Below are positions 5,601 through 28,359 of a stretch of 64,000 nucleotides of DNA, one piece after another. Numbering within the stretch: position 1 is the first letter of the stretch; each line of letters starts with the position of its first letter. This stretch comes from Paragordius varius (Eukaryota; Animalia; Nematomorpha), in assembly GCA_964247055.1 (NCBI GenBank), contig OZ176058.1, positions 3,162,001-3,226,000 on the forward strand, given 5' to 3'. The notes below the pieces were generated by a model that worked only from the letters and a program-made list of their open reading frames with translations, ran no database searches and was not told the origin of the DNA. The position numbers and the translations under genes are program-made.

Positions 5601-8600
5601 AATAAAGTTTTATATCGTAATTTTTAATTTTGATATTTTGACAACAATATTTTAGATTTTTCATAGATATACATATTAGATAAAAAATAATAAACAATTA
5701 TATATTTTATTATCGAATTTCAAAGTTTTATTAATAAATAACATTATAAGGAACAAAATAAGAAAAATTAATAAAAACTGTTTATTCATAACGGTTTTTA
5801 CAATAGAAATTGAATACGAAGAAAACGGAAAAATATAATGACAAACTTTTTTTAAACACAATCCATAATTTTAAACCTTAATTTTTCTTATATAAAATAT
5901 TTTACCAGTGTGATTATGTTACCAATTTTTATCTCTATTATATACAATGTTAAAAACAATCTATATTTAACAAAATCAGATCTAGAAAGGTTTTCTGAAA
6001 AAAACTATTTGTCTTTATATTTTCACGTTTTTTCGTATAATTCAATTTTTACTGTATTTTAATTCGATATCTCATAAACAATTCTATATATAAAAACATT
6101 GAAAAATCAAATTTATATTATTAAAATTTGATAACATCAGTTTAATTTTTATAAATTTTGAATGTTAAATAAAAATTCTATACATATTAATTTCAAAAAC
6201 AACCAGGTACTCTCTAGAAATCGATATATAAATGATTTGAGTTTGGTTTCTCCTTTGCAATTCCTCTTATTTGGGACTTATCAATTCTGTTTGCAAAATG
6301 ACACCTCAATAATCACAATAAATGATTGGTTTTTTTATTTCATTTTTACTTTTCATTTTTAAATGATTTCTGCGTAAAAAAATATCTATATAAAAATTAC
6401 AGTAAAGAATAAAAACAAAATGTAGAAATATAAAGACTAATATTTTTTTCGGACAACCATATTTTTCTAACATTTATTTTTTAATACAATAGATTTAATT
6501 ACATTTGTAAAATATTCAATTTACATATCTAATTCTTAATTTGTAATTTTAAACACCAAGTTATATTAAAGAAAATCGAAAAAGCACAGCGGTTCTTTTG
6601 AAAAAAATATTTTTCTTTATCTTTTTTATATCCCTGTATATCCATTTTTACGTTCTTATTAACTTTATTTTATTTATCCACTGTAAAACAAAATGCATTT
6701 TATGGTTGACATCTCCTTAATTTTTACCATTTAATTTTTTAAACATATTTTAAGCATATTTTAAGCATATCTTTTACCGTAAAAACTGAAATTATACGGA
6801 CAAAATTAAAAATATAAAGACAAATATTTTTTCTAACATACAACCATACTATTTAAATCTTAATTTATTTAAAAACGCATTGTTTTAAATATCAAAGTCT
6901 GAAATAGATATATATATATATATTACTGACACATACAATTTTATATTTTACAACTGTAACTAAGGATTTAAAAAGTAGGATGGTTGTATTTTTAGATAAA
7001 AATATTTGTCTTTATATTTTTACGTATTGTCCGTATATTTTTACTTTTTACTGTAAATAAAAATTTTACTTAATCTAAATAGATTTTTTACAAAATAAAT
7101 CGGTAAGAAAATAGATAGATCCACGTTTGTTGGTTCAATTTTACTTGATAAAATAATAAATGAGTTTTGATATTAAATTATAGTTGATTTTATGAAAAAA
7201 TTATATTTTTTTACCTTACATCTTATTTTTACTAATACATAGTCTTATCTTTTCACATTATTATATAATACAATATTAACAATTCTTTTAATTTTAACTA
7301 ACCTATTTCATATTTTTGATAACCTTTAATAACCACACTTACATAAATAAAATTTTTCACCAAAGTAGATCCATAAGATATTTTTTTTAAAAAAAAATTC
7401 TTTACACCAAATTTTTTACTGTAAAACTTGGTTATCAAATTTAATTTTTCATATGGGAATTTCATTATTTTTGCATATAAAAAATAGGATCCGTATAAAA
7501 AGAACTCTTTGTTAGCCAAATTCGTTTTTTTTACAATATGCTGCTGATAAATTAATTAATATTGTTACATATAAAAAATATATGATTGATTTTACAAAAT
7601 TTATAGTTTTTTAATACTTTCCAAATTCAAATTTTCTCTTTCAGAGTAAAATAGGATTATTATCTAAAATTAATTCTTGGCAAAGTTGATATTATTACAG
7701 TTTGCTTTAGATAAAATGATTAATATAGTTATTCCAGGATTGAAAATTGTAAGATATAAATTTATTTTTGAAACACTAGTTATTGCTTATTGTTAAAATT
7801 TATACCAAATTATATTATTTGCATATAAAATAATAGGATTCGTATAAAATTGATTCTTGGCATAACTTATTACGGTGTGCTTTTGATAATATGCTTAATA
7901 TAGTTATTTAAGGAATAAAAATTATAATTGATATAAATTTATTTTTGAAACACTAATCATTGCTTATTCTACAAACATTGACTAATTTATTTTATTTGCA
8001 TTTACGATTATTGGATTCGTATAAAAATTGATTCTTGGCATAACTTGTTACGGTGTGCTTTTGATGAAAAGCTTATATAGTTATTTAAGGAATGAAAAAT
8101 ATATGATATAAAAAAATAATCGTTTTTCTTAAAATTCTTAAAGCATCTTAAAATTTATACCGGCAATAAATTACTTTATTTGCATGTAAAATAACATAGG
8201 ATTCGTATAAAAATGGATTCACATCTATTGGCTAAGTTGATATTATTACGGGGTGCTTTCGATAAAATGATTAATATAGTTATATAAGGAATGAAAAATA
8301 TATGATTTATATAAAAAATAATCGTTTTTTAATAAAAAAGCATCTTATTAAAATTTATACCGGCTATAAATTACTTTATTTGCATATAAAATATAATAGG
8401 ATTCGTATTAAAATGGATTCACATCTATTGGCTAAGCTGATTTTATTACGGGGCGCTTTCGATAAAATGATTAATGTAGTTTGCCAGGATTCCAGTTTAC
8501 TGCATAAATTGCTTCAACACAGTGAGACTCAAGAACAGTAAATTTATATATATTTTGAAATTTTCAATTATAAACTAAAAGATAGCCCTATTTATATACC

Positions 8601-16132: not shown

Positions 16133-19100
16133 ATGGCACTTAAAAAGGTCAAAATTTATAGTCTGGTGATATGCATCAAAAATATAATAACCAAAAAATT
16201 TTTTCAATGATTTTGCTTGGTAATTTCATGAATATTTGGCCTTAAACAGGTTTAAGGCTCTCAAAAATTCCATTTTAATCAGAGGACCTAAATATATATA
16301 GATCGTCTTTTTTGGTTTTATTAATGGCAGAAAATAAATTTATCAGCTGCTAGTCTTTTGGCGTTAAGCTGCCATATGCAAAAAACGCATGGTATGCTTG
16401 GAAATATTTTTACAAAAAATTTTACCTTTAAAACAATATACAATCGCGTAATCGATGACATAAAAGCAAACATTATTAAACCGCCTAAAACTCTGCGTTT
16501 GGCAACATTAAAGTAACTTATTTTATATTAATTAATAGGTATCCTTACATCCCTTTATCATATAAATACATTGAAACTGAACTGTCAAAAAGTTATAAGG
16601 ACAATGATAACAACGCATTTTTTACATTTTCAAATCTTCTTCAAGCCTTAGTCAAACAGCATATCATCGAATTCGTAATTTAATAATAATAACTGAAAAA
16701 AATTAAAAAGATATCCATTTTTGATTTCATTATTAATTATTTTAGCCAACAAAGAATACATTTCATGAAAATATGAATCAAATAACACAATTTGCAAATT
16801 ATACCGAAATATCAACTGAGACCTTAAAACAATTTTTAGATCAACCTGTATTTTCTCATGGGTTAAAGGTAAGCCTTTTTATACAAATCATTAATTATTA
16901 AATATATATATTAATATATATTATATTTATATTTAATTTATAATATATATAATTTGCCTAGCTATACATTTAAATTTAAAAAAACCTAACTTTATAAAAT
17001 TTTGACCAAAGACTTTAACAATTTTTTAATAGTTTTCTATCATCCAAAAAATATAATCGGGGCTTTTTTACATCCTATGTTCCTAAAAGATATTTAAACA
17101 ATTATCGTTTTGTTTTCCAAATTAAAACCCCAAACCTTTATGAAAAAAATTTTTAATTTATTTTCTTTATTTTATAATTACAATATTGCTTTTAACAATA
17201 TTTTTTATTATATATATATATTTGGAATTTTATTATTTTTTATGGCTTACAGTAAAAATTGGAATTATACGAACAAAACGTTAAAATATAACGATTAATA
17301 TTTTTTAAGGCAACCACACTTTTTTAATCTTGATTTTTTAAATATAATTCATAGTTTCAAACTACAAATTATAATATAGATATCAATTATTTACGCTTGT
17401 AATTAAATGTTTTTTATACGATAAATTAAAGTTTAAAAAGTATGGTGGTTGTCTTTTCAAAGAAAAATTGTTATATTTTTACACTTTGTCCGTATAATTT
17501 CAATTTTTACTGTAATTATTGTTTTGTGGCATTCTTGCTATCTGTAAATTTGAAAAACGAACCCAAATTTAAATAATTAAAAACGATTGAGCTGTAATAA
17601 ACGATTTATATACAATACTTTTTATTATGAAGGTAAAACATAGATTTCCAAGAGATACAGTAAAAATTGAAATTATACGGACAAAACGTAAATATAAGAC
17701 AATTATCTCAAAGATAAGCAACCATACTTTTTAAAACCTTAATTTTGCTTATATAAGCTATTTAATTACAATCGTAAAATAAAGAATTGATTTTATATCT
17801 ATTTAAGACTTTGTCATTTAAAACAATGAGTTATATTGAAATAAATCAAGATTTAAAAAGTTGTTTTAGAAAAAAAATTGTCTTTATATTTTTACGTTTT
17901 GTCCGTATAATTTCAGTTATTTTTTAAATGTATAAAGACAACACATCCATACTTTTTAACCGAGTTTTTTTCTTTATAATAATAAATAACTTGTGTATTA
18001 CCAATTTACATCTCTAAAAAACAATACCATAGGCTAGATTTATAAGAAGCAAAATCAAAAATATAGATGTCATTTATTTTATAAATATTTGTCTAAGTTT
18101 TTTACCTTGTGTCTTTATGATATCTAATATCCATTGTAATTCAAATTATGCTGACAAAAATATGTAAAAACATTAAGATAAATATTTTCTCAAACCTTAA
18201 TTTTTACCACATAAACTATTCAATTACAATTTTTTAAGGAAAGTTTGTATAAAAAATTTTTATCTATATTCTCTATTGGTAAACCATCTAACACTTATAT
18301 TCACTATTTACTCTTTTACAGATTAAATTGTCAACCAAAGAATTTTGGCGACAAAATAATGACATTAAGGCATGGTGGATTCAGAACAAAGCTGCCCACG
18401 AATTTTTATCAGTTAACTCGTTAACTAAGGCAAAATCCAGTCAAAATTTATCGAATTACTTTTTGATTCCCGAAAAACCGAATTCACAAAATCAATCTCT
18501 TGCCTCAATAGAAAACACTCAAAAAAATTTGGATTTTACAGACAAAAAAGATAAATACTTTCAAAATCATTTTTTACTTGCCTGGGGCGAAAAAGATGCC
18601 ACATCTAACAATCATGTCTGCATATTTTCTAGTTTAAATCCTACTTTTTATCAAACTGTTAATGTTTTAAACTCTGCTCTTCTCAAACGTATTTATCAAA
18701 CTGTTCAACAAAACAAAAATCAAAATCATTTAAAATTGTTTCCGTTCTTTTCCAATCGGAAAAAACAAGTAGTTTTGAATTCCTCCTCTGTAATGACTTT
18801 TAGTTTTAGCGCTCCAAAAAATATGCTATTGTTTCTTTCAACATTGCTTGGTTTAAGTGGATTAACTATGAACACGTTCACCCATTCTCTATTCCACGTT
18901 TCATTAATTCTAAATGACATTTTGTCTTTTGTAATCCTTGGGTTTGTCATTAAAATTTATACGTGGGATAAATTGAATGGCATTATATCATGGTTGTTAA
19001 CTTGTGATAATATTAACAAACAAATCATGGAATCAAAACTACCATATTATTCTAAAGTAATTTTTTAATTTTTTTAGGAATTTAAGATTTTTTTGGGGGT

Positions 19101-22100
19101 TTTATAGTTTAAAATTATAAAAAACGTTAAAATATAAAGACAAATATGTTATTTCAAAAAACAACCATACTTTCAAATTCACCCTTGAACAATTCAAATT
19201 AACCCTAAAAATAAATTATGTGTTTTCGAATTAATTATAACTCATTATTAATATATAACACAGTGTGCAAAATTGGGGGTATTTTTTTTCTCAGGATATC
19301 ATATTAAGCTTAATATAACCGTTGTGACATGGACATCCTAAAAATATAAGGATAAAAAAAATTGTCAATATAGAAAACTTTTTTTTAACTTTTCCCATAT
19401 ATGGATAAATTCGGAAAAAATCAATTTATTTGCATAATACTTGATCAAAAATTATAAAACTTAGATATCATATAAATAATATTAAATAAATATTATTTGC
19501 AAATTTTGGCTCAATATGAATGGATAAAATTAAATTAAACGTCAATTTATTAAATCCAACTAAATTTAGCCCTTTATATTAGTAACATAAAAAATACTTG
19601 ATGAAAATCAATATAATATGCGCCAAAATTTAAGTTAAACTTTATATTTTAATATAAATATTACTTAAATATAATAAAAAATAGATTTTAACTAAGTTAA
19701 AAACTTTTGAAATTTTTTATTTTACTTAAATAAAATTAAATTTTTTAATATCAACTGTAATATAATCATATCTAGTGATTACAAATATAACCATATTTTT
19801 TTTACCTGGATTTTTGAATTGTAGATGATATTGACTGTTGTACCCTGATATGATGGTATATTTTATAATATAGAAAAATATTGTGGAATTCAGATTACCA
19901 AGATATAAAAAACCAATGTAATCTATTGTAAAAATCATATTTTAAAGACAAACTTGCTAATCACAAGCAAACATCCACCAGAAAATTATATTTTGATACA
20001 TTATGTTTATTGTGTAATAAATCTAAATATAATATATTTTTCTAAATCTAAAATTGTTTACTTGTTTTTGAACACCTTTTAATAGATTTAAATATAAGAA
20101 TTTAAAGAAATGGTACTCAACAAAAAATTAAAAGGGCTGCAAAATCTTGTCTCATGAACCGTGCATTATACTATAACTATAAAAACTTGCAAACATTTAT
20201 ATTAAAAATAAGTATATAAACGCCAAAAATAAAACTCCTCCAAAGATTTCTATTTTTAATGTTGAGTTCAAGAATTGGTTTCTCTTAAATTACCCATTCT
20301 ATAAAACTCCTCCATAGATTGCTATTTTTTGTTATGTTGAGTTATGCCGGTATTCAAGCACACAATAATTTTAAGTTAATTCTTCAAATCAAAAATGTAA
20401 AATTTAAAAATCTTCAGAATACGGCCAGTTTTTTAATGAATTATTTTTTAAAAAACGGTTTATGGCAAAAGAAAGTGTTAAGTGTACATCAGTTTTACCA
20501 AAACTTCAGCTCTAAAAGCTTATTTATGGCCTTGAATTATCAATTAAATTTTATGTCATACTTATTTTTAATATAAATGTCTGCAAGTTTTTATAGTTAT
20601 AGTATGTTGCACGGTTCATGAGACAAGATTTTGCAGCCCTTTTAATTTTTTGTTGAGTACCATTTCTTTAAATTCTTATATTTAAATCTATTAAAAGGTG
20701 TTCAAAAACAAGTAAACAATTTTAGATTTAGAAAAATATATTATATTTAGATTTATTACACAATGAACATAATGTATCAAAATATAATTTTCTGGGGAAT
20801 GTTTATGTGATTAGCAAGTTTGTCTTTAAAATATGATTTTCACAATGGATTCCATTGGTTTTTCATTGTTATCTTGGTAATCTAAATTCCACAATATTTT
20901 TCTATAATTTTTATAAAAAATACCATCATATTAGGTTACAACAGTCAACATCATCTACAATTCAAAAATCCAGGTAAAAAAAAATATGGTTATATTTGTA
21001 ATCACTAGATATGATTATATTACAGTTGATATTAAAAAAATTTAATTTTATTTAAGTAAAATAAAAAATTTCAAAAGTTTTTAACTTAGTTAAAATCTAT
21101 TTTTTATTATATTTAAGTAATATTTATATTAAAATATAAAGTTTAACTTAAATTTTGGCGCATATTATATTGATTTTCATCAAGTATTTTTTATGTTACT
21201 AATATAAAGGGCTAAATTTAGTTGGATTTAATAAATTGACGTTTAATTTAATTCTATCCATTCATATTGAGCCAAAATTTGCAAATAATATTTATTTAAT
21301 ATTATTTATATGATATCTAAGTTTTATAATTTTTGATTAAGTATTATGCAAATAAATTGATTTTTTCCGAATATATCCATATATGGAAAAAGTGAAAAAA
21401 AAGTTTTCTACATTGACAATTTTTTTTATCCTTATATTTTTTGGATGTATATGTCACAAGGGTTATATTAAGCTAGGTATGATATCTTGAGTAAATTTGT
21501 TGCACACTGTGTAATATATATCTTTATGACATAGTTTATTATTTTTTCAGTATTAGTTTAATTTAAGACAAAATTTTATTTTTTGAAATTATATTTAAAT
21601 ATAGGTTTATTAATCTTAAAAATTATATATAATTTATTTAAGGGTGAATTTGAATTGTTGGAGGGTGAATCGAATTGTTTAAGGGTGAATTTGAATTGTA
21701 AACTACTCTTTATTCCCTCAACGCCTTTTTTCAAAATTGAAGATGGTTAAGTTAAGGTAGAATTTGATTTTGGATTTCCAAGAGGTTCTACTTAACAATC
21801 TTTAAGTTTTATGTTCTTAGATCATCGGAGATTGGAAAAGAATAGGTTTTAATAGTGCGGAAATATTGTTAAATATTTGTAGCTAATTATCAGGTGGCCT
21901 TCTGTAAATATGACCTGACCATTTAAGCCCTATTTGGCATGAATTTTTTATATATAAGACATTTTTGTTACAATGGTAAAATTTGATTTAATACATATTT
22001 ATACATATTTTGCAGTAAAAACTGAAATTATACGGACAAATCGTAAAAATATAAAGACAAATATTTTTTTATAAAAGAACAGCCATACTTTTTTAATCTT

Positions 22101-25100
22101 AATTTATTTCAATTCATTGTTTTAAACTACAAAATTTAATATAGAAATGTAAATTGATTATAACACTAATTTTGTATTTTATGATTGTAATTACAGTAAA
22201 AATTGAAAATTATACGGACAAAACGTAAAAATCTAAAGACAAATATTTTTTTATAAAAGACAATCCATACTTTTTAAATCTTGATTTATTTCAATATAAC
22301 TCATTGTTTTTAACTATAAAGTTTAATATAGATATGTAAATTGATTATAACACTAGCAAATATGTATTTTATGATTGTAATTACAGTAAAAACTAAAATT
22401 ATACGGACAAAACATAAAATTATAAAGACAAATTTCTTTTTATAAAAGACGACCATCCATAATTTTCAAATCTTGATTTACTTCAATATAACTTATTGTT
22501 TTAAATTTCAAAGTCTGAAATAGAGATATATATTACTAACACAATCAATTCTATGTTTTACAATTGTAACTAAATAGCTTTTATGAGAAAAATTAAGGTT
22601 TTAAAAGGTATGAGGTTGTCTTTTAGATAAAAATATTTGTCTTTTTACCTTTTGTCCGTATAATTTCAATTTTTACTGTACTTTGCAGTTTAAAACAATT
22701 ATTTATATTTAAAAAAATTTTAGTTTAACATCACAGCCGTCTTTTAGGATAAAAAACTATTTGTCTTTATGTTTTTACGTTTTGTTTTTAATTATTTTAC
22801 TTTTTACTGTATGTTTTCCTTACTAATATTTTTAATCCTCTTTCATACTATAACTTATATGGTTTAGTTATTTTTTAATATATTAGTCTTTTTGATATTT
22901 TTTATTTAAAATTTATAGATCAGTAAATCGAAAAATATCCAAACATCCGAAGAAATAATCTCTATTTCCCCCGAAAAATACGAAAATTCATTCCTAAATA
23001 TCAACCAAAATATCGACTATTCAAATTTTCAGTATGTCTTTTACTCCCTTTTTGAAAGCTTATATTGGCACATTCATAATATTTAAAATTTTTTATATAT
23101 AGACAAAATTTAAAAATTACAGTAAAAACTGAAATTATAGGGACAAAATGTAAAAATATAGTGACAAATATTTTTTTTCAAAAGTGAACCATACTTTCTA
23201 AAACCTTAGTTTTTGCTATATAAAATATTTAATTACAATCGTAAACTACATAATTGATTGTGCTACCAAATTACATTTCTATTTAATATTTTGCATTTTA
23301 AAACAATCGCTTATAACAAAATTAAGATTTAAAAAGTATGGTTTTCTTTTAGAAAAAAATATTTGTCTTTATATTTTTACGTTTTGTCCGTATAATTTCA
23401 ATACTGTAAAAGACAAATATATTTTTAAATAAAAACAATTATACTTTTTTAAAAATAATTGTTTTTTTATATAGCTCATTATTTTGAATTGCAAAATAAG
23501 GAATAAATTGTAAATTTATATAACTCAATTATATATCTCTTTAAAATTGTGTTTTGTATACCAAAAAATTTTAAAGAATATAGTTTTGTTTTTTATAAAA
23601 AAATATTTGACTACTAGTTGTTACATTTTTTTAATATAATTATTATTTATAATATATATTGTTCAAATACATATATTGGAATTATACGGACAAAATGTAA
23701 AATATATAGAATATTTTTTATTAGACTAACATACTTTTTAAACCCTAATTTTTCTCATATAAGTTATTTAGTTACAATTAAATATAGAATTGATTGTGTT
23801 AGTATTACACTTTGCCTGCCATTTCAATGTTGTTTTGAAAAAAGCATTTAAAAAGTATGGTTGTCTTTTATAAAAAAAATATATTTTTCGTTTTGTATGT
23901 ATAATTTCAATTTTTACTATATTGAAAATTTGTTCTTTTATTGTTAAAATATTATATAGACATAAAAATTACAGTAAAAACTGAAATTATACGGACAAAA
24001 CGTTAAAATATAAAGACAAATATTTTTTTTTAAAGACAATCAAATTTTTTAAAAACTTAATATTTGCTATATATTATAAATATATATTTACTAGTAAAAT
24101 TGATTGTAGTACCAATTTACATTTATATTTTATATTTTGCAGTATAAAATAATGAGTTTTATTGAAATAAATTAAGATTTACTATGGTTTTGTTTTAGAA
24201 AAAAATATTTGCCTTTATATTTTTACGTTTTGTCCGTTGAATTTCAGTTTTTACTGTACTTTAAATAGCTATTTAAAGAAAGAAAAAGACCGAATTTTTA
24301 ACCGAAATCGTAAATGTCTCATCTTATATCTGAAATTGTCAAATAATTGAGTATTTTATTATTTTAAATAAATTTTTTATTTTAATTTTTAATTTAGAAC
24401 GGTTCCAGTGCTACAAAAATTGGTTGAAACCGGAATTGAACAAACTCAAATGGAATGTTTGCTTTTTTACAATTTTCTCATGCTTGCAAAAAAGCGAAAT
24501 AATACAGTAAAATTAAATTTATACCGACAAAACTTAAACGTATAAACAATTTTTTTGTTAAAAGACAATTATAATTTTTTTATTTTTTTAGCGATGAAAA
24601 TGATTTAATTAGAATTTATTCATAGATTTTATTAATAGGCATCTTTTTTTTATTTTGCAAGTTAAAACAATGAGATGACAAAACGTAAAATTAAAAGATA
24701 ACCATATCTAAATCTAGATATTTTTTAAACAAAACCTAAGGTATGCAATATTTAAAAATAGAAATGTAAATTAGTAACATATATTGAATTATATTATGTT
24801 AAAATTATATATTTTCTATGCTGTAAATATTACGGTTTAAAAAGTGTTATGGTTGCCTTTTTTTAAAAAAAACTTAATTTTTTTATGTTTTGTCTTAACA
24901 ATTTCAATTTTTATTTTAAAAAGGAATATGAAAAAAATGAACCACAAATTTCTGATACCACAAACTATGCTAGTCATTATACATATATGGACTCGTCTTT
25001 TGTGGATTTTAATGGTAAACTATTTTTTGAATTGAAAAATAATTCTTTAAAAAACAAATTAGTAAGCATAGTGTCAACGAGAACAAATAATTTATTTAAA

Positions 25101-26187
25101 AATAATATTGTTTCTTTTGTTTTAGTTAATCCATTAAAAAATGGATTTAGTACAATTTGATGAATTTCGGAAAATTAAAATTATTATTTCTACCTAAATT
25201 TGTTAAAATTTGCCAATATTAAATGAAATTGTATAGTCACCAAAATGTTTATAATGACAAATTAATTTTTTTTAAATTCAATAATATTTTTTGATTGTTT
25301 TAAAATAAACTATGATTTTAATGGGTTATATAAAATATTGAGGATTACAAAATGTGATTTTAAAGAGAGTTTTTTTTTAATTTTTACAAATTTTTTAATA
25401 AAACATTTTACAAGATCTAAGTGAAAAATTGATTTTTTAAACAAATTTTCTAAATATGTTTCGAATTTTGGCGCGAATTAGTGAAAAATGTTAAATGAAC
25501 GGTGGTTTTTGCAGTGTCTTTATGATTATGTTTGAAATTTAATTAAATATATTTATTAATGCCCATTTATTTTTCAAATGCGACTCTCTTCGGAGTGTTT
25601 TTTGTTGCAAAAATAAGGTCGCGAAGCCATTTGTTGTCTGTTCTAGTTTTATGCATGCTAATATTTTAATATTTATTAAGCATTTTTATCATAACTTTAC
25701 AAAATAATTTATTTTATATCAATATTTGTTAATATCTATATATGAATAGATATATATGTATATAATCAATATTTTATTTCAAAATTAACTTTAAATAGAC
25801 ATTTATATGTTTTTTTGTTGAATTTTACCCTTAGAAACCGATATGATATCTGCCGAATATGCAATCGAACAATGGTTAACTAATCAAATTAACTCATCAT
25901 TGGATAATCAAAATACTATGAATTCGAATATCGATAATAACGATACAAATTTCATTGCTAAAAATAATGAAAACCAAAAAATTTGTGAATTTGATTGTCA
26001 ACGTAAAGCTTTACCAATTCTCCAACAATTGGGATTAATTCGCAGCAATCTAAGGACTGAAAATATAAAGATTGAGGATACATTTAATGGTGGTGATGGC
26101 GAAAAATTACAAAATTATCAAATTTGCAATGTTTTGAGTCAGGCTTCATTAATATTAAGTCAAAAGTTAAAGGGATATGTTAGTTAA
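16133..26187 (+). CDS. TMEM143: TMEM143/DUF3754-family membrane protein, about 618 aa; join(16133..16147,16331..16512,16539..16674,16746..16868,18322..19056,22919..23031,24398..24506,24924..25014,25835..26187)
   Basis: Phase-consistent exon chain. Remembered TMEM143 motifs align in order: YIPLSY~FIPFS, QFANYTEISTETL~AQANFSPLSEDTL, KYFQNHFLLA~RYFKRVVLA, two hydrophobic segments, LPYYSK~MLYYRS, MECLLFYNFL~KEALLAHSFL, AIEQWL...FDCQRKALPILQQL~VENWL...FNGTRALAHLQAL. The first mini-exon/start codon and the 26-nt second intron are the weakest parts of the model. Confidence 0.72.
16331..16868 (+). CDS. TMEM143: TMEM143-like exons 2-4 (16331..16512,16539..16674,16746..16868)
   Basis: Open frames KINLSAASLL...LATLK / YPYIPLSYKY...HIIEF / PTKNTFHENM...SHGLK joined by GT-AG introns of 26 and 71 nt. 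Confidence 0.7.
18322..19056 (+). CDS. TMEM143: TMEM143-like large exon with two transmembrane-like segments
   Basis: ORF 18328 (246 aa); ttttacag acceptor, AAA|gtaatt donor. Confidence 0.85.
19172..21702. mobile_element. MITE-A copy interrupted by the foldback element
   Basis: Left half at 19172-19257; central part and right arm at 21513-21702. Confidence 0.8.
19258..21512. mobile_element. Foldback-type non-autonomous DNA transposon, about 950-bp inverted arms, 8-bp TSD
   Basis: Ends ACACAGTGTGCAA...TTGCACACTGTGT; AATATATA at 19250-19257 and 21513-21520; arms about 19258-20215 and 20559-21512 are near-identical reverse complements; no transposase ORF. Confidence 0.9.
22013..22678. mobile_element. 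MITE-B with three tandem left halves (starts 22013, 22194, 22384) and one right arm
   Basis: Repeated CAGTAAAAA(C/T)TGAAATTATACGGACAAA; ends TTTTACTG|TA at 22678. Confidence 0.85.
22919..23031 (+). CDS. TMEM143: TMEM143-like exon (ISKSKNIQTSEE...DYSNF)
   Basis: atttatag acceptor, CA|gtatgt donor; phase 0 in, phase 2 out. Confidence 0.72.
23120..23406. mobile_element. MITE-B full copy
   Basis: TA|CAGTAAAAACTG...ATACTG|TA. Confidence 0.85.
23972..24256. mobile_element. MITE-B full copy
   Basis: TA|CAGTAAAAACTG...TTTTACTG|TA. Confidence 0.85.
24398..24506 (+). CDS. TMEM143: TMEM143-like exon (TVPVLQKLVETGIEQTQMECLLFYNFLMLAKKRNNT)
   Basis: aatttag acceptor; the donor ACA|gtaaaa lies in a MITE TIR. 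Confidence 0.75.
24505..24916. mobile_element. MITE-B copy that makes up almost the whole TMEM143 intron 24507-24923
   Basis: TA 24503-24504, left TIR from 24505, right TIR AATTTCAATTTTTATTT ending 24916, TA 24917-24918. Confidence 0.72.
24924..25014 (+). CDS. TMEM143: TMEM143-like exon (EYEKNEPQISD...VDFN)
   Basis: aaaag acceptor, G|gtaaac donor; needed to restore phase to the last exon. Confidence 0.68.
25835..26187 (+). CDS. TMEM143: TMEM143-like terminal exon (TDMISAEYAIEQWL...KGYVS*)
   Basis: cccttag acceptor; ORF 25843. A possible donor gttagt at 26179 could extend the gene. Confidence 0.8.
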
Positions 26188-28359
26188 AAATGATATATTT
26201 TGAAATATAAAGATGTGCCTCGCAATTACAGTAAAAATTGAAATTATATAATAGCGGCAAAATGTAAAAATTTAAAAACAAATATTATTTAGTTTGAAAA
26301 GACACCCAACTACCTTGATTTTTAAAACTTATCGTTTTGGATTACAAAATAGAAATTATATAGATGTAAATTGGTTATATATGTTCAAATGTATATTACA
26401 ATTGATAATTATAAAGTATGTTTAGGAAAAACCAAAGTTTTTAAATGTATTGTATGTTTGTCTTTTAAAAAATATATGTCTTTATATTTTAACGTTTTTC
26501 CTGTAAAATTTCAATTTTACTGTATGTATGTTGTAATAGAAAGATGTCACCCAATAATTACAGTAAAAATTAAAGAAAATATATTTTTTACACTAAAAAC
26601 ACACAATCATACTTTTTTCTTTAATTTTACCTACACAAACTCTATAAATAATATATTTATTTTTATTATTGGGTATTTTACTAATTTACAACTTTATTTT
26701 ATATCTTACAGCCTAAACCGATAAGTTAAGGTTATATTGTATGGTTATCTTTTTTAAAAAAATGTCTCTTAGCATTTTCATTTGTCCGTGTAATTAAATT
26801 ACTTTAATTAACAAGCGCATTTAATATTTTTTACTGTATAATAGATTTACCTAGAAATTATATAATATTTATGATATATGAAAAATAAATTACGCGTGTT
26901 TTATACAATTTAATTAAAGAAATTTTTATTATACAAAAAGAAGTTAAATTATAAAGACAAAACATTTATAAAACGTAATGAGTTTTCCCATATAAACTAT
27001 TTAATTACTATTTGATTTGAATAAAATATAATTCATAAGGAGAGATTACGTACATTAATAGACATTTTTTCACAATTATAATTATTTTAAACTTATTAAA
27101 AACTGAAATTATACGGACATAACGTAAAAATATAAAGACAAATATTTTTTTCTAAAATACAACCATACTTTTTAAATCTTGATTTCTGAAAATATAACTC
27201 ATTGTTTAAAGTGACAAAATTTTAAACAAAGATAAATATAACTAACACAATAAAAACTATATTTTACAGTTGTAAATAAATAGCTAATATGGGAAAAATT
27301 AAGGATTTAAAAAGTATGGTTGTCTTTTTAATAAAAACATTTGTCTTTATATTTTTACGTTTTATCCGTATAATTTTAATTTTTACTATTTTTCCATATA
27401 TCAATTCAATTAAATTAAACAATATGTAATGGATTGTTACCTTTCATATTTGCAGTATAAAACAATAAGGAGTATTTAAAAAAAGAATTCTTATAAAATT
27501 ATTTGTCTTTATGTTTTATATTTTTTCTGTATAATTTTATCCTTTTTTCTATAAAAAATAAATGTGCCACCCGAATAAAAAATACCCAAAAATATTTTAA
27601 TTTGGAAAATTATATTATATTCCAAATCATAGCAAGATCATTATTACTTTACAATAATATTTTTTATTATATATTATTCAGTATTATGTGTATTTTGTTT
27701 AAAACTTTAATTCGAATTGGGGTATCTGGTAACCCCAAATTATATTTAAATTTATTATTGAAACGAACTTATCCAATTTAAATTTATTCTATCCTAACAA
27801 AAATTAATACTTACAATTCAAATCACCCTAAAAATTAATTTTTTTGGGTTAATATTATAATATGAAATAAACTTTATGGCTTAGTTTATTATTTTTTCCG
27901 TATTATATAAATTTTAAACAAAATTTTATTTTTAAAAAATATAATATAGGTAAATTTTAATTCTAATAAACATATAATTTATTTTACAGCGAATTTGAAT
28001 TGTTCGTTGGTCAATTTGAACTGTAAATTGTATATTAAAAAGCCAAAATATCTAAATATATATAATTTTGAATAAAAAGTTCCATGTCAAAATCCAACGC
28101 CATTTTTATTTACCAAATTTTTAGAAAATATATTTGATTCTAACTTAAAGTTATATTACTAATGTTGATTAAACAAAAATAAACAGTAAAGGTGGTATAT
28201 TCATTATTTCTATATATTGTTAATGCAGAAATGTCATTTTGCTAAATGTATACCTTGAAATTTATTCCAAATAAATTATATCAATGAGAGAAACGCATTA
28301 TTATTTAATTATGAGTAGTAGCAAGTTTTTTCAAATTATCTTTTATAGTGTTCCAATGC

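Follow-up and report, generated by a model that had tools for sequence, protein, structure and literature searches.

Introduction

Several known systems come close to the locus analyzed here, among them two kinds of transposon-derived splicing. Introners, which are introns derived from DNA transposons, were reportedly described by Huff, Zilberman and Roy in 2016, and Rushforth and Anderson are said to have found in 1996 that the transposon Tc1 is spliced from C. elegans pre-mRNAs. Our locus lies in a stretch of 64,000 nucleotides from the nematomorph Paragordius varius (contig OZ176058.1, positions 3,162,001 to 3,226,000), called the window below, and all positions given without a locus name are those of the window. 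It contains a predicted intron (intron X, 24507-24923) made up almost wholly of sequence from one family of miniature inverted-repeat transposable elements (MITEs), MITE-B, in a gene that has a relative in the horsehair worm Gordionus. On the sequence evidence, we estimate a probability of roughly 0.6 that intron X arose by insertion of MITE-B into coding sequence, and we regard the locus as a well-supported candidate, not a demonstration.

The birth of new spliceosomal introns in animals is poorly documented, and the transposon route has rarely been seen there. When 3,325 genomes were surveyed, just two groups of animals proved to have introners, and in some introner families insertion can come with a small codon change (Gozashti et al. 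2022, bioRxiv 10.1101/2022.06.06.494994). SOS splicing is a spliceosome-independent process triggered by inverted repeats. It is known from Tc1, Tc3 and Tc4 in C. elegans and from HSMAR2 in human cells; it requires the repeats to pair, and few of its junctions are GU-AG (Zhao et al. 2025, Nature, PMC12779559).

The present locus shares features with each of these systems. As in introners, a non-autonomous DNA element with a target-site duplication and terminal inverted repeats (TIRs) fills the whole intron, one splice site would be carried by the element and the other recruited from the flank, a small codon change is predicted, and introns of similar build are predicted at two further loci. 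MITE-B differs from introners in that its thousands of copies, in introns and spacers, are mostly non-genic and in that it carries no acceptor; the likeness is drawn from three inspected loci. The resemblance to Tc1 splicing lies in a TA-targeting exonic element with CAGT tips that is, or here would be, removed through sites in or near its inverted repeats, with small changes to the mRNA. The C. elegans cases are recent mutant alleles that give several imprecise products, whereas the insert described here is old and apparently fixed, with a single predicted in-frame GT...AG pair. The substrate class of SOS splicing, an exonic DNA transposon with inverted terminal repeats, is also the same, but here the repeats are degraded and a canonical GT...AG pair is available. 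The kind of system is already known, as introner-like or Tc1 splicing, and this case would add a member to it. It is anatomically clean: the tip of a MITE repeat coincides with the predicted donor, further loci have the same design, and the orthologue keeps the neighboring introns but apparently not X. The genome could allow intron gains to be counted and dated, and could be used to test whether a MITE that is not specialized for the purpose drives them.

MITE-B sequence extends across intron X from tip to tip

An earlier sequence-only reading of the window had proposed that intron X is one MITE flanked by TA dinucleotides. The boundaries it gave for the element, the two TAs, the donor and the acceptor all match the sequence (Table 1). 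Position 24505 is the first base of the left tip, CAGT-AAAATT..., and the predicted donor, ACA/GTAAAA (the slash marks the splice junction), is placed such that its GT corresponds to bases 3-4 of the left repeat. The final bases of exon 3, CA, are bases 1-2 of MITE-B. Because the alignment to the consensus reaches base 1 and a TA stands in front of it, this CA belongs to the element. The right tip ends at 24916 as ...CAATTTTTATTT (TTTTTATTT compared with TTTTTACTG in the consensus). Its change from ACTG to ATTT next to the U tract, which had also been proposed, is seen in the sequence, and the altered tip forms a U-rich tract ahead of the acceptor. The acceptor, AAAAG/, ends at 24923 and contains the first AG past the U-rich right repeat. 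The tips of the element are 2 nt from the donor and 7 nt from the downstream exon, both are flanked by TA, and the only non-element sequence in the intron is AAAAG and one TA.

MITE-B sequence with the family termini accounts for the intron end to end, but it comes from two partial copies and not from one MITE. The 412-bp insert is a composite, in which consensus positions 1-191 are joined to an inverted 273-1. The first unit includes the distinctive internal motif around TTTTGCA..TTAAAACAATGAG. The second is in the minus orientation, which scored 44.8 bits with nhmmer compared with 29.7 bits in the plus orientation. At the inner joint there is neither a tip nor a TA, and the insert is longer than a full MITE-B (~295 bp), so that it is not a single complete family member. 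Identity to the consensus at aligned positions was 83% for unit 1 and 86% for unit 2, within a family range of 76-93% and in its older half. The insert could be either a composite that moved as one unit or a single copy that later acquired part of a second; movement as a unit is conceivable because there are two outward-facing tips. Independent contigs from a DNA run span both outer junctions without differences, and the insert is therefore not an assembly artefact.

Both joins proposed for this site read in frame. Excision of 24505-24918 in silico, which gives the putative empty site, joins AAT AAT A to AA AAG GAA TAT. The spliced form, ACA/GT to AAAAG/G, is also in frame; it would put Thr where Lys-Lys stood and so shorten the protein by one residue, at a place that is poorly conserved and follows a long predicted helix.

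A possible path from exonic insertion to intron

In the scheme that we favor, MITE-B would have inserted at the TA of ...AAT AA(TA) AA AAG GAA..., within a single coding exon that is now exons 3 and 4. Terminal-repeat bases 3-8, GTAAAA, would serve as the donor, being a normal 5' splice site in an AT-rich genome, and the opposite, U-rich repeat would serve as the pyrimidine tract. CTTAAC at 24894-24899 may provide a branch site. The first AG, 5 nt past the TA and in phase by chance, would serve as the acceptor, and splicing from ACA/GT to AAAAG/G would remove 417 nt. The transcript could have stayed usable because the repeat supplies the GTAAAA donor and an in-phase AG follows the U-rich repeat. 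We infer from this arrangement that the site was exonic before the insertion, that the named GT and AG are used, and that removal is by the spliceosome.

Three features of the locus bear on this scheme. The CA at the end of exon 3 could not have been reached by insertion into an existing intron, unless a precise deletion had fused element and exon. Other MITE-B copies near the exons of this gene are ~40-140 nt from the exon ends. The acceptor is AAG in all three MITE-bounded introns inspected, compared with TAG in the other three introns of this gene, and AAG in place of TAG fits the recruitment of exonic AGs. MITE-B would be an opportunistic introner and not a specialized one: because it carries no acceptor, only about one in three of the landings that could otherwise be tolerated would have the right phase.

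Comparison with the Gordionus orthologue

We used the orthologous gene of Gordionus (locus L013) to compare intron positions. Gordionus exon 6650-6785 runs uninterrupted through ...LNATQSEKKESYT. A phase-2 intron stands before this exon and a phase-1 intron behind it, and TILDDKLYISQATVESQIQNWL comes next. In P. varius, intron 23032-24397 is also in phase 2 and is at the equivalent place, 4 codons off. Intron Y, in phase 1, comes shortly before the conserved EQWL block and is 7 codons from the Gordionus phase-1 intron. We take these last two introns to be counterparts, because indels in the flanks yield whole-codon offsets and not changes of phase. Intron X has no partner of the same phase in the Gordionus gene. 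Given that it is in phase 0 without a partner and that its neighbors are common to the two species in order and phase, we read X as present in one lineage only. The sequence-only reading had looked to relatives for an intronless orthologue, and the outcome was mixed: the Gordionus exon is uninterrupted and there is no phase-0 intron, but a phase-1 intron is 0-4 codons away and the alignment is ambiguous. The likeness between KKESY in Gordionus and NNKKEY in the reconstructed empty site was considered as support for that site and rejected, since alternative alignments score alike.

The ambiguity matters for one alternative, which we consider unlikely, namely that X is an old intron matching the Gordionus phase-1 intron, filled by two MITE-B insertions and then trimmed until only MITE sequence was left. 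The fit of the donor to the MITE tip would then be partly a coincidence of CAGTAAAA with an AT-rich donor. The best local alignment, in which NNT at the close of exon 3 pairs with SYT at the close of the Gordionus exon and no more than 1 nt separates X from the Gordionus phase-1 intron, favors this history, as do the crowding of the introns of the window with MITE-B and the two-copy insert with its untidy inner joint. That alignment beats an ungapped alternative, in which the two introns are 4 codons apart, by only ~4 score units. An old intron would also have had to differ in phase (0 compared with 1) while both common introns flanking it kept theirs, and the phase-1 intron already pairs with Y. 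The alignment of the insert to consensus base 1, with TA in front, makes the final two bases of the exon part of the element; only 5 bases in the intron are non-element sequence, which therefore leaves no room for an older intron; and the same geometry is found at two more loci (L011 and L012).

Several observations weigh against an origin of X by insertion into an exon. The best alignment just described is one of them, and the composite nature of the insert is another. Intron turnover in this gene is high: the 3.9-kb intron 19057-22918, after the membrane block, is also absent from Gordionus, and absence from one distant orthologue is therefore modest to weak evidence. In-frame excision has a one-in-three prior and we counted it as weak evidence. 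Another frame of the left flank gives equally long spanning open reading frames at other offsets. No counterpart of exon 4 was detectable in Gordionus, and this exon stands on its open frame and phase bookkeeping. Lastly, the three inspected loci were chosen for this pattern and show recurrence, not frequency. The core of the earlier proposal, a TA-targeting MITE in an exon with a GT in its repeat and an in-phase AG beyond it, agrees with the anatomy, the frames, the Gordionus comparison and the two further loci; the composite insert and the nearby intron of the orthologue go against it.

The reading frame has persisted downstream of the insertion

Protein searches were run exon by exon. The 258-aa open frame at 18292-19065 had one phmmer match among 1.84 billion proteins (E 1.7e-4), LOC135924739 of Gordionus sp. 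m RMFG-2023, a 454/455-aa protein that is uncharacterised and is the only relative detected. Three colinear blocks match this protein: the membrane block (18808-18996; 44% identity over 63 aa by tblastn), exon 3 (4 of 300 shuffles scored as well as the local alignment) and the last exon, which has motifs in common with the Gordionus C-terminus around EQWL and EFD...LGL (tblastn E 0.007). These colinear matches place the exons in one gene. Exon 2 is colinear with Gordionus ISPLEK, with weak similarity that is not significant alone. Exon 4 is predicted from its open frame and from its length: its 91 nt bring the phase from 0 exactly to the 1 that the exon 5 acceptor requires. The gene occurs once in the genome, and no paralogue with an empty site was found there.

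The 146 codons downstream of the insertion (30 + 116) are still free of stops. In neutral simulations at a divergence of 0.14-0.17, 146 codons stayed stop-free in only 0.6-1.5% of cases, compared with 18% at 0.05. Divergence here is that of the two units from the MITE-B consensus, which overstates age if the source copy had already diverged. The gene seems to have stayed under selection after the insertion, and the low neutral survival of the open frames argues that the gene was selected and the insert removed from the RNA.

These results also bear on the very unlikely case of an incorrect gene model or a decaying gene, in which the insert, with its stop codon at 24543-24545, interrupts the frame and stays in the RNA, and the downstream frames are leftovers or belong to another transcript. 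Exon 4 without a homologue would fit such a case, as would the other frames of the left flank that are also open by chance. It is hard to reconcile with three colinear Gordionus matches that span the insertion and include the last exon, with 30- and 116-codon frames that are intact at 14-17% divergence, and with phases that agree over all five exons.

Inverted repeats and removal by another route

If the insertion was exonic, as we favor, the element could in principle be removed from the RNA by a route other than the predicted splice sites, either SOS splicing or other cryptic sites, and 24507/24923 would then not be the true junction. In SOS splicing, exonic DNA transposons are cut out of the RNA at positions within or close to the inverted repeats, and some products may be in frame (PMC12779559). 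The genome contains a CAAP1 domain (G000:C3:9724963-9725082) and a multi-exon RtcB gene (G000:C6:4252771-4262260), and the insert has 47-nt arms (24509-24555 and 24865-24911) that are 70% complementary. We nevertheless think this route quite improbable at this locus, where the repeats have decayed. The RNA fold predicted for the insert is hardly better than that of shuffles (z-score -1.9), and the minimum-energy fold leaves the ends unpaired. An in-frame GT...AG pair with a U tract is present, and the GT is at the same element position, in frame, at L011 and L012. Reported SOS junctions vary and mostly break the frame, a poor fit to a gene that has been kept for long.

Three factors have been reported to act in the SOS splicing of DNA transposons, namely CAAP1, RtcB and AKAP17A. 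Support was weak for a further model, a hairpin of the repeats that would draw the splice sites close to each other, given the same fold z-score and unpaired ends.

Other loci with the same geometry

The arrangement at intron X was also found at L011 and L012, and in all three inspected loci the predicted donor GT is at element bases 3-4. At L011 (2786-3227), a MITE-B copy with a nested insert is between G+C-rich coding flanks. On its left is a TA followed by CA/GTAATA, and on its right an intact tip, TTTTTACTG, followed by TA. The first downstream AG is in an AAG 23 nt past the TA, and the spliced form is in frame; exact excision restores 35+114 codons (a 149-codon frame). At L012, an exon ends CTT ACA/GTAAAAATT at the left tip of MITE-B (ACA/GTAAAAA at ~3112), and at the other end of the 2.6-kb intron a degraded right tip precedes an in-frame AAG. 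In-silico excision of MITE-B copies in 311 kb, exact compared with shifted controls, was based on 20 clean copies and had no power, and a scan of MITE-B tips for coding-like flanks was not discriminating.

MITE-B is a Tc1/mariner-type MITE family with thousands of copies

We built a MITE-B profile from 16 full-length copies, which gave a 295-bp consensus. The consensus begins with CAGTAAAAATTGAAATTATACGGACAAAACG, and its far end is the reverse complement of CAGTAAAAATTGAAATTATACGGACAAAACG, closing in TTTTTACTG. The majority of the 20 full-length copies in the window have CAGT...ACTG tips with TA on both sides. A 31-nt tip probe taken from a neighboring MITE-B copy had five matches in the window and none in shuffles. 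Genome-wide, in an assembly of 110.5 Mb with ~22% G+C, there were at least 2,235 matches to a 33-nt pattern made of TA and the tip, with 2 mismatches at most, compared with 0 for the reversed control. From the TA flanks, the conserved CAGT...ACTG tips and the tip count, MITE-B is a Tc1/mariner-type (Stowaway-like) non-autonomous MITE with long imperfect TIRs and thousands of copies. It resembles known members of that class in its TA duplication, its tips, its size of ~295 bp, its long imperfect TIRs, its copy number and its lack of coding capacity. The insert at 24505-24916 differs from them in being a two-unit composite.

Both ends of MITE-B read CAGTAAAA outward, and CA/GTAAAA is therefore presented on whichever strand is transcribed. 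This bears out, for both ends of the consensus, the earlier claim that every MITE-B carries the donor at both ends.

MITE-B could be a working intron-maker, with thousands of copies carrying a 5' splice site at both ends, and with exonic landings fixed across the genome wherever an in-phase AG was at hand. Fresh insertions may first need SOS splicing, with GT...AG splicing taking over once the repeats have begun to decay. We hold this tentatively and find it doubtful, and that SOS splicing helps a fresh insertion to survive is speculation. If true, it would link a newly described RNA repair pathway to the birth of introns.

MITE-B makes up ~13% of the window, compared with ~1% of 200 kb elsewhere (G000:C1:5000001-5200000), a gap of more than tenfold in density between the window, on the 5.07-Mb contig C9, and contig C1. 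At 22013-22385 in the window, two adjoining short MITE-B forms of ~183 bp each abut a full copy at 22384-22678. These short forms match consensus 109-295 and 1-153 at once, and correspond to the repeat arms without the center. A further full copy with TA flanks (26229-26522) starts 41 nt past the stop codon of the gene and is probably in the 3' UTR (untranslated region).

Table 1. Positions of the MITE-B insertion and of the exons and introns of the gene that carries it
Feature	Position	Strand	Description	Basis
Left TA	24503..24504		Putative target-site duplication	Sequence; TA flanks are the family rule
MITE-B unit 1	24505..24674	+	Consensus 1-191; left tip CAGT; GTAAAA at 24507-24512 as predicted donor	nhmmer, 32 bits, E 2.3e-9
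MITE-B unit 2	24677..24916	-	Inverted, consensus 273 to 1	nhmmer, 44.8 bits, E 2.8e-13
Right TA	24917..24918		Putative target-site duplication	Sequence
Intron X (predicted)	24507..24923	+	417 nt, phase 0, GT...AG, AAG acceptor	Flanking reading frames
Exon 1	18292..19056	+	Large upstream coding exon with two-helix membrane block; ends AAA/GTAATT, phase 0	Open frame; phmmer, tblastn
Exon 2	22919..23031	+	Acceptor TATAG/, donor CA/GTATGT; ends in phase 2	Sequence; phase matches Gordionus intron after ...NQNP
Exon 3	24398..24506	+	Acceptor TTTAG/; ends ...AAT AAT ACA	Translation; local alignment to Gordionus residues 314-351
Exon 4	24924..25014	+	91 nt; phase 0 at its start, phase 1 at its end (ATG/GTAAAC)	Open frame
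Intron Y	25015..25834	+	Phase 1; likely counterpart of Gordionus phase-1 intron	Phase and position
Exon 5 (last)	25835..26187	+	Open frame of 121 codons; stop TAA at 26185-26187	tblastn to Gordionus C-terminus, E 0.007

Identity of the gene and other features of the region

The gene had earlier been labeled TMEM143, a name that finds no support here: no DUF3754 was detected, and neither the exons nor the 455-aa Gordionus orthologue match Pfam. No Pfam family matched the exons, the 258-aa exon or the full-length Gordionus orthologue, even at E values up to 10. A profile search of the genome with PF12576 (DUF3754) found nothing, which is uninformative, as no control genome matched either and the search reads exon by exon. 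A lead to Gpi1 from the ESM Atlas (0.81) was weak and was rejected since the exon belongs to the Gordionus-like gene, and a second look-up there gave no match. A word-based protein search found nothing with the 258-aa exon and only the protein itself with the Gordionus sequence. The AF2 model of the Gordionus orthologue had a pLDDT of 34 and was unusable. The first 258 codons form one exon in P. varius, whereas the Gordionus gene has at least 4 introns over this part (L013 3001-5343).

No spliced contig was seen over 21500-26300 in sequencing runs X1, X3, X4 and X5, and the runs in which the locus was found were all of DNA type. Contigs from run X3, which is labeled as a different organism, were identical to window 23572-25835 at a depth of 2-4. 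The run could come from this species despite its label or from a very close relative, or the contigs could be carry-over; being identical and of low depth, these contigs therefore add no comparative information.

The 3.9-kb intron contains a young foldback element at 19905-20866, with 247-nt arms that are 98% complementary and outer 61-nt arms that are 93% complementary; it belongs to a family other than MITE-B. A short tandem repeat with a GGGTGAATTTGAATTGTT-like unit is at 21500-21821, and is among the two most repeated stretches of 21500-26300 in the DNA contigs, with a summed word depth of >1 million.

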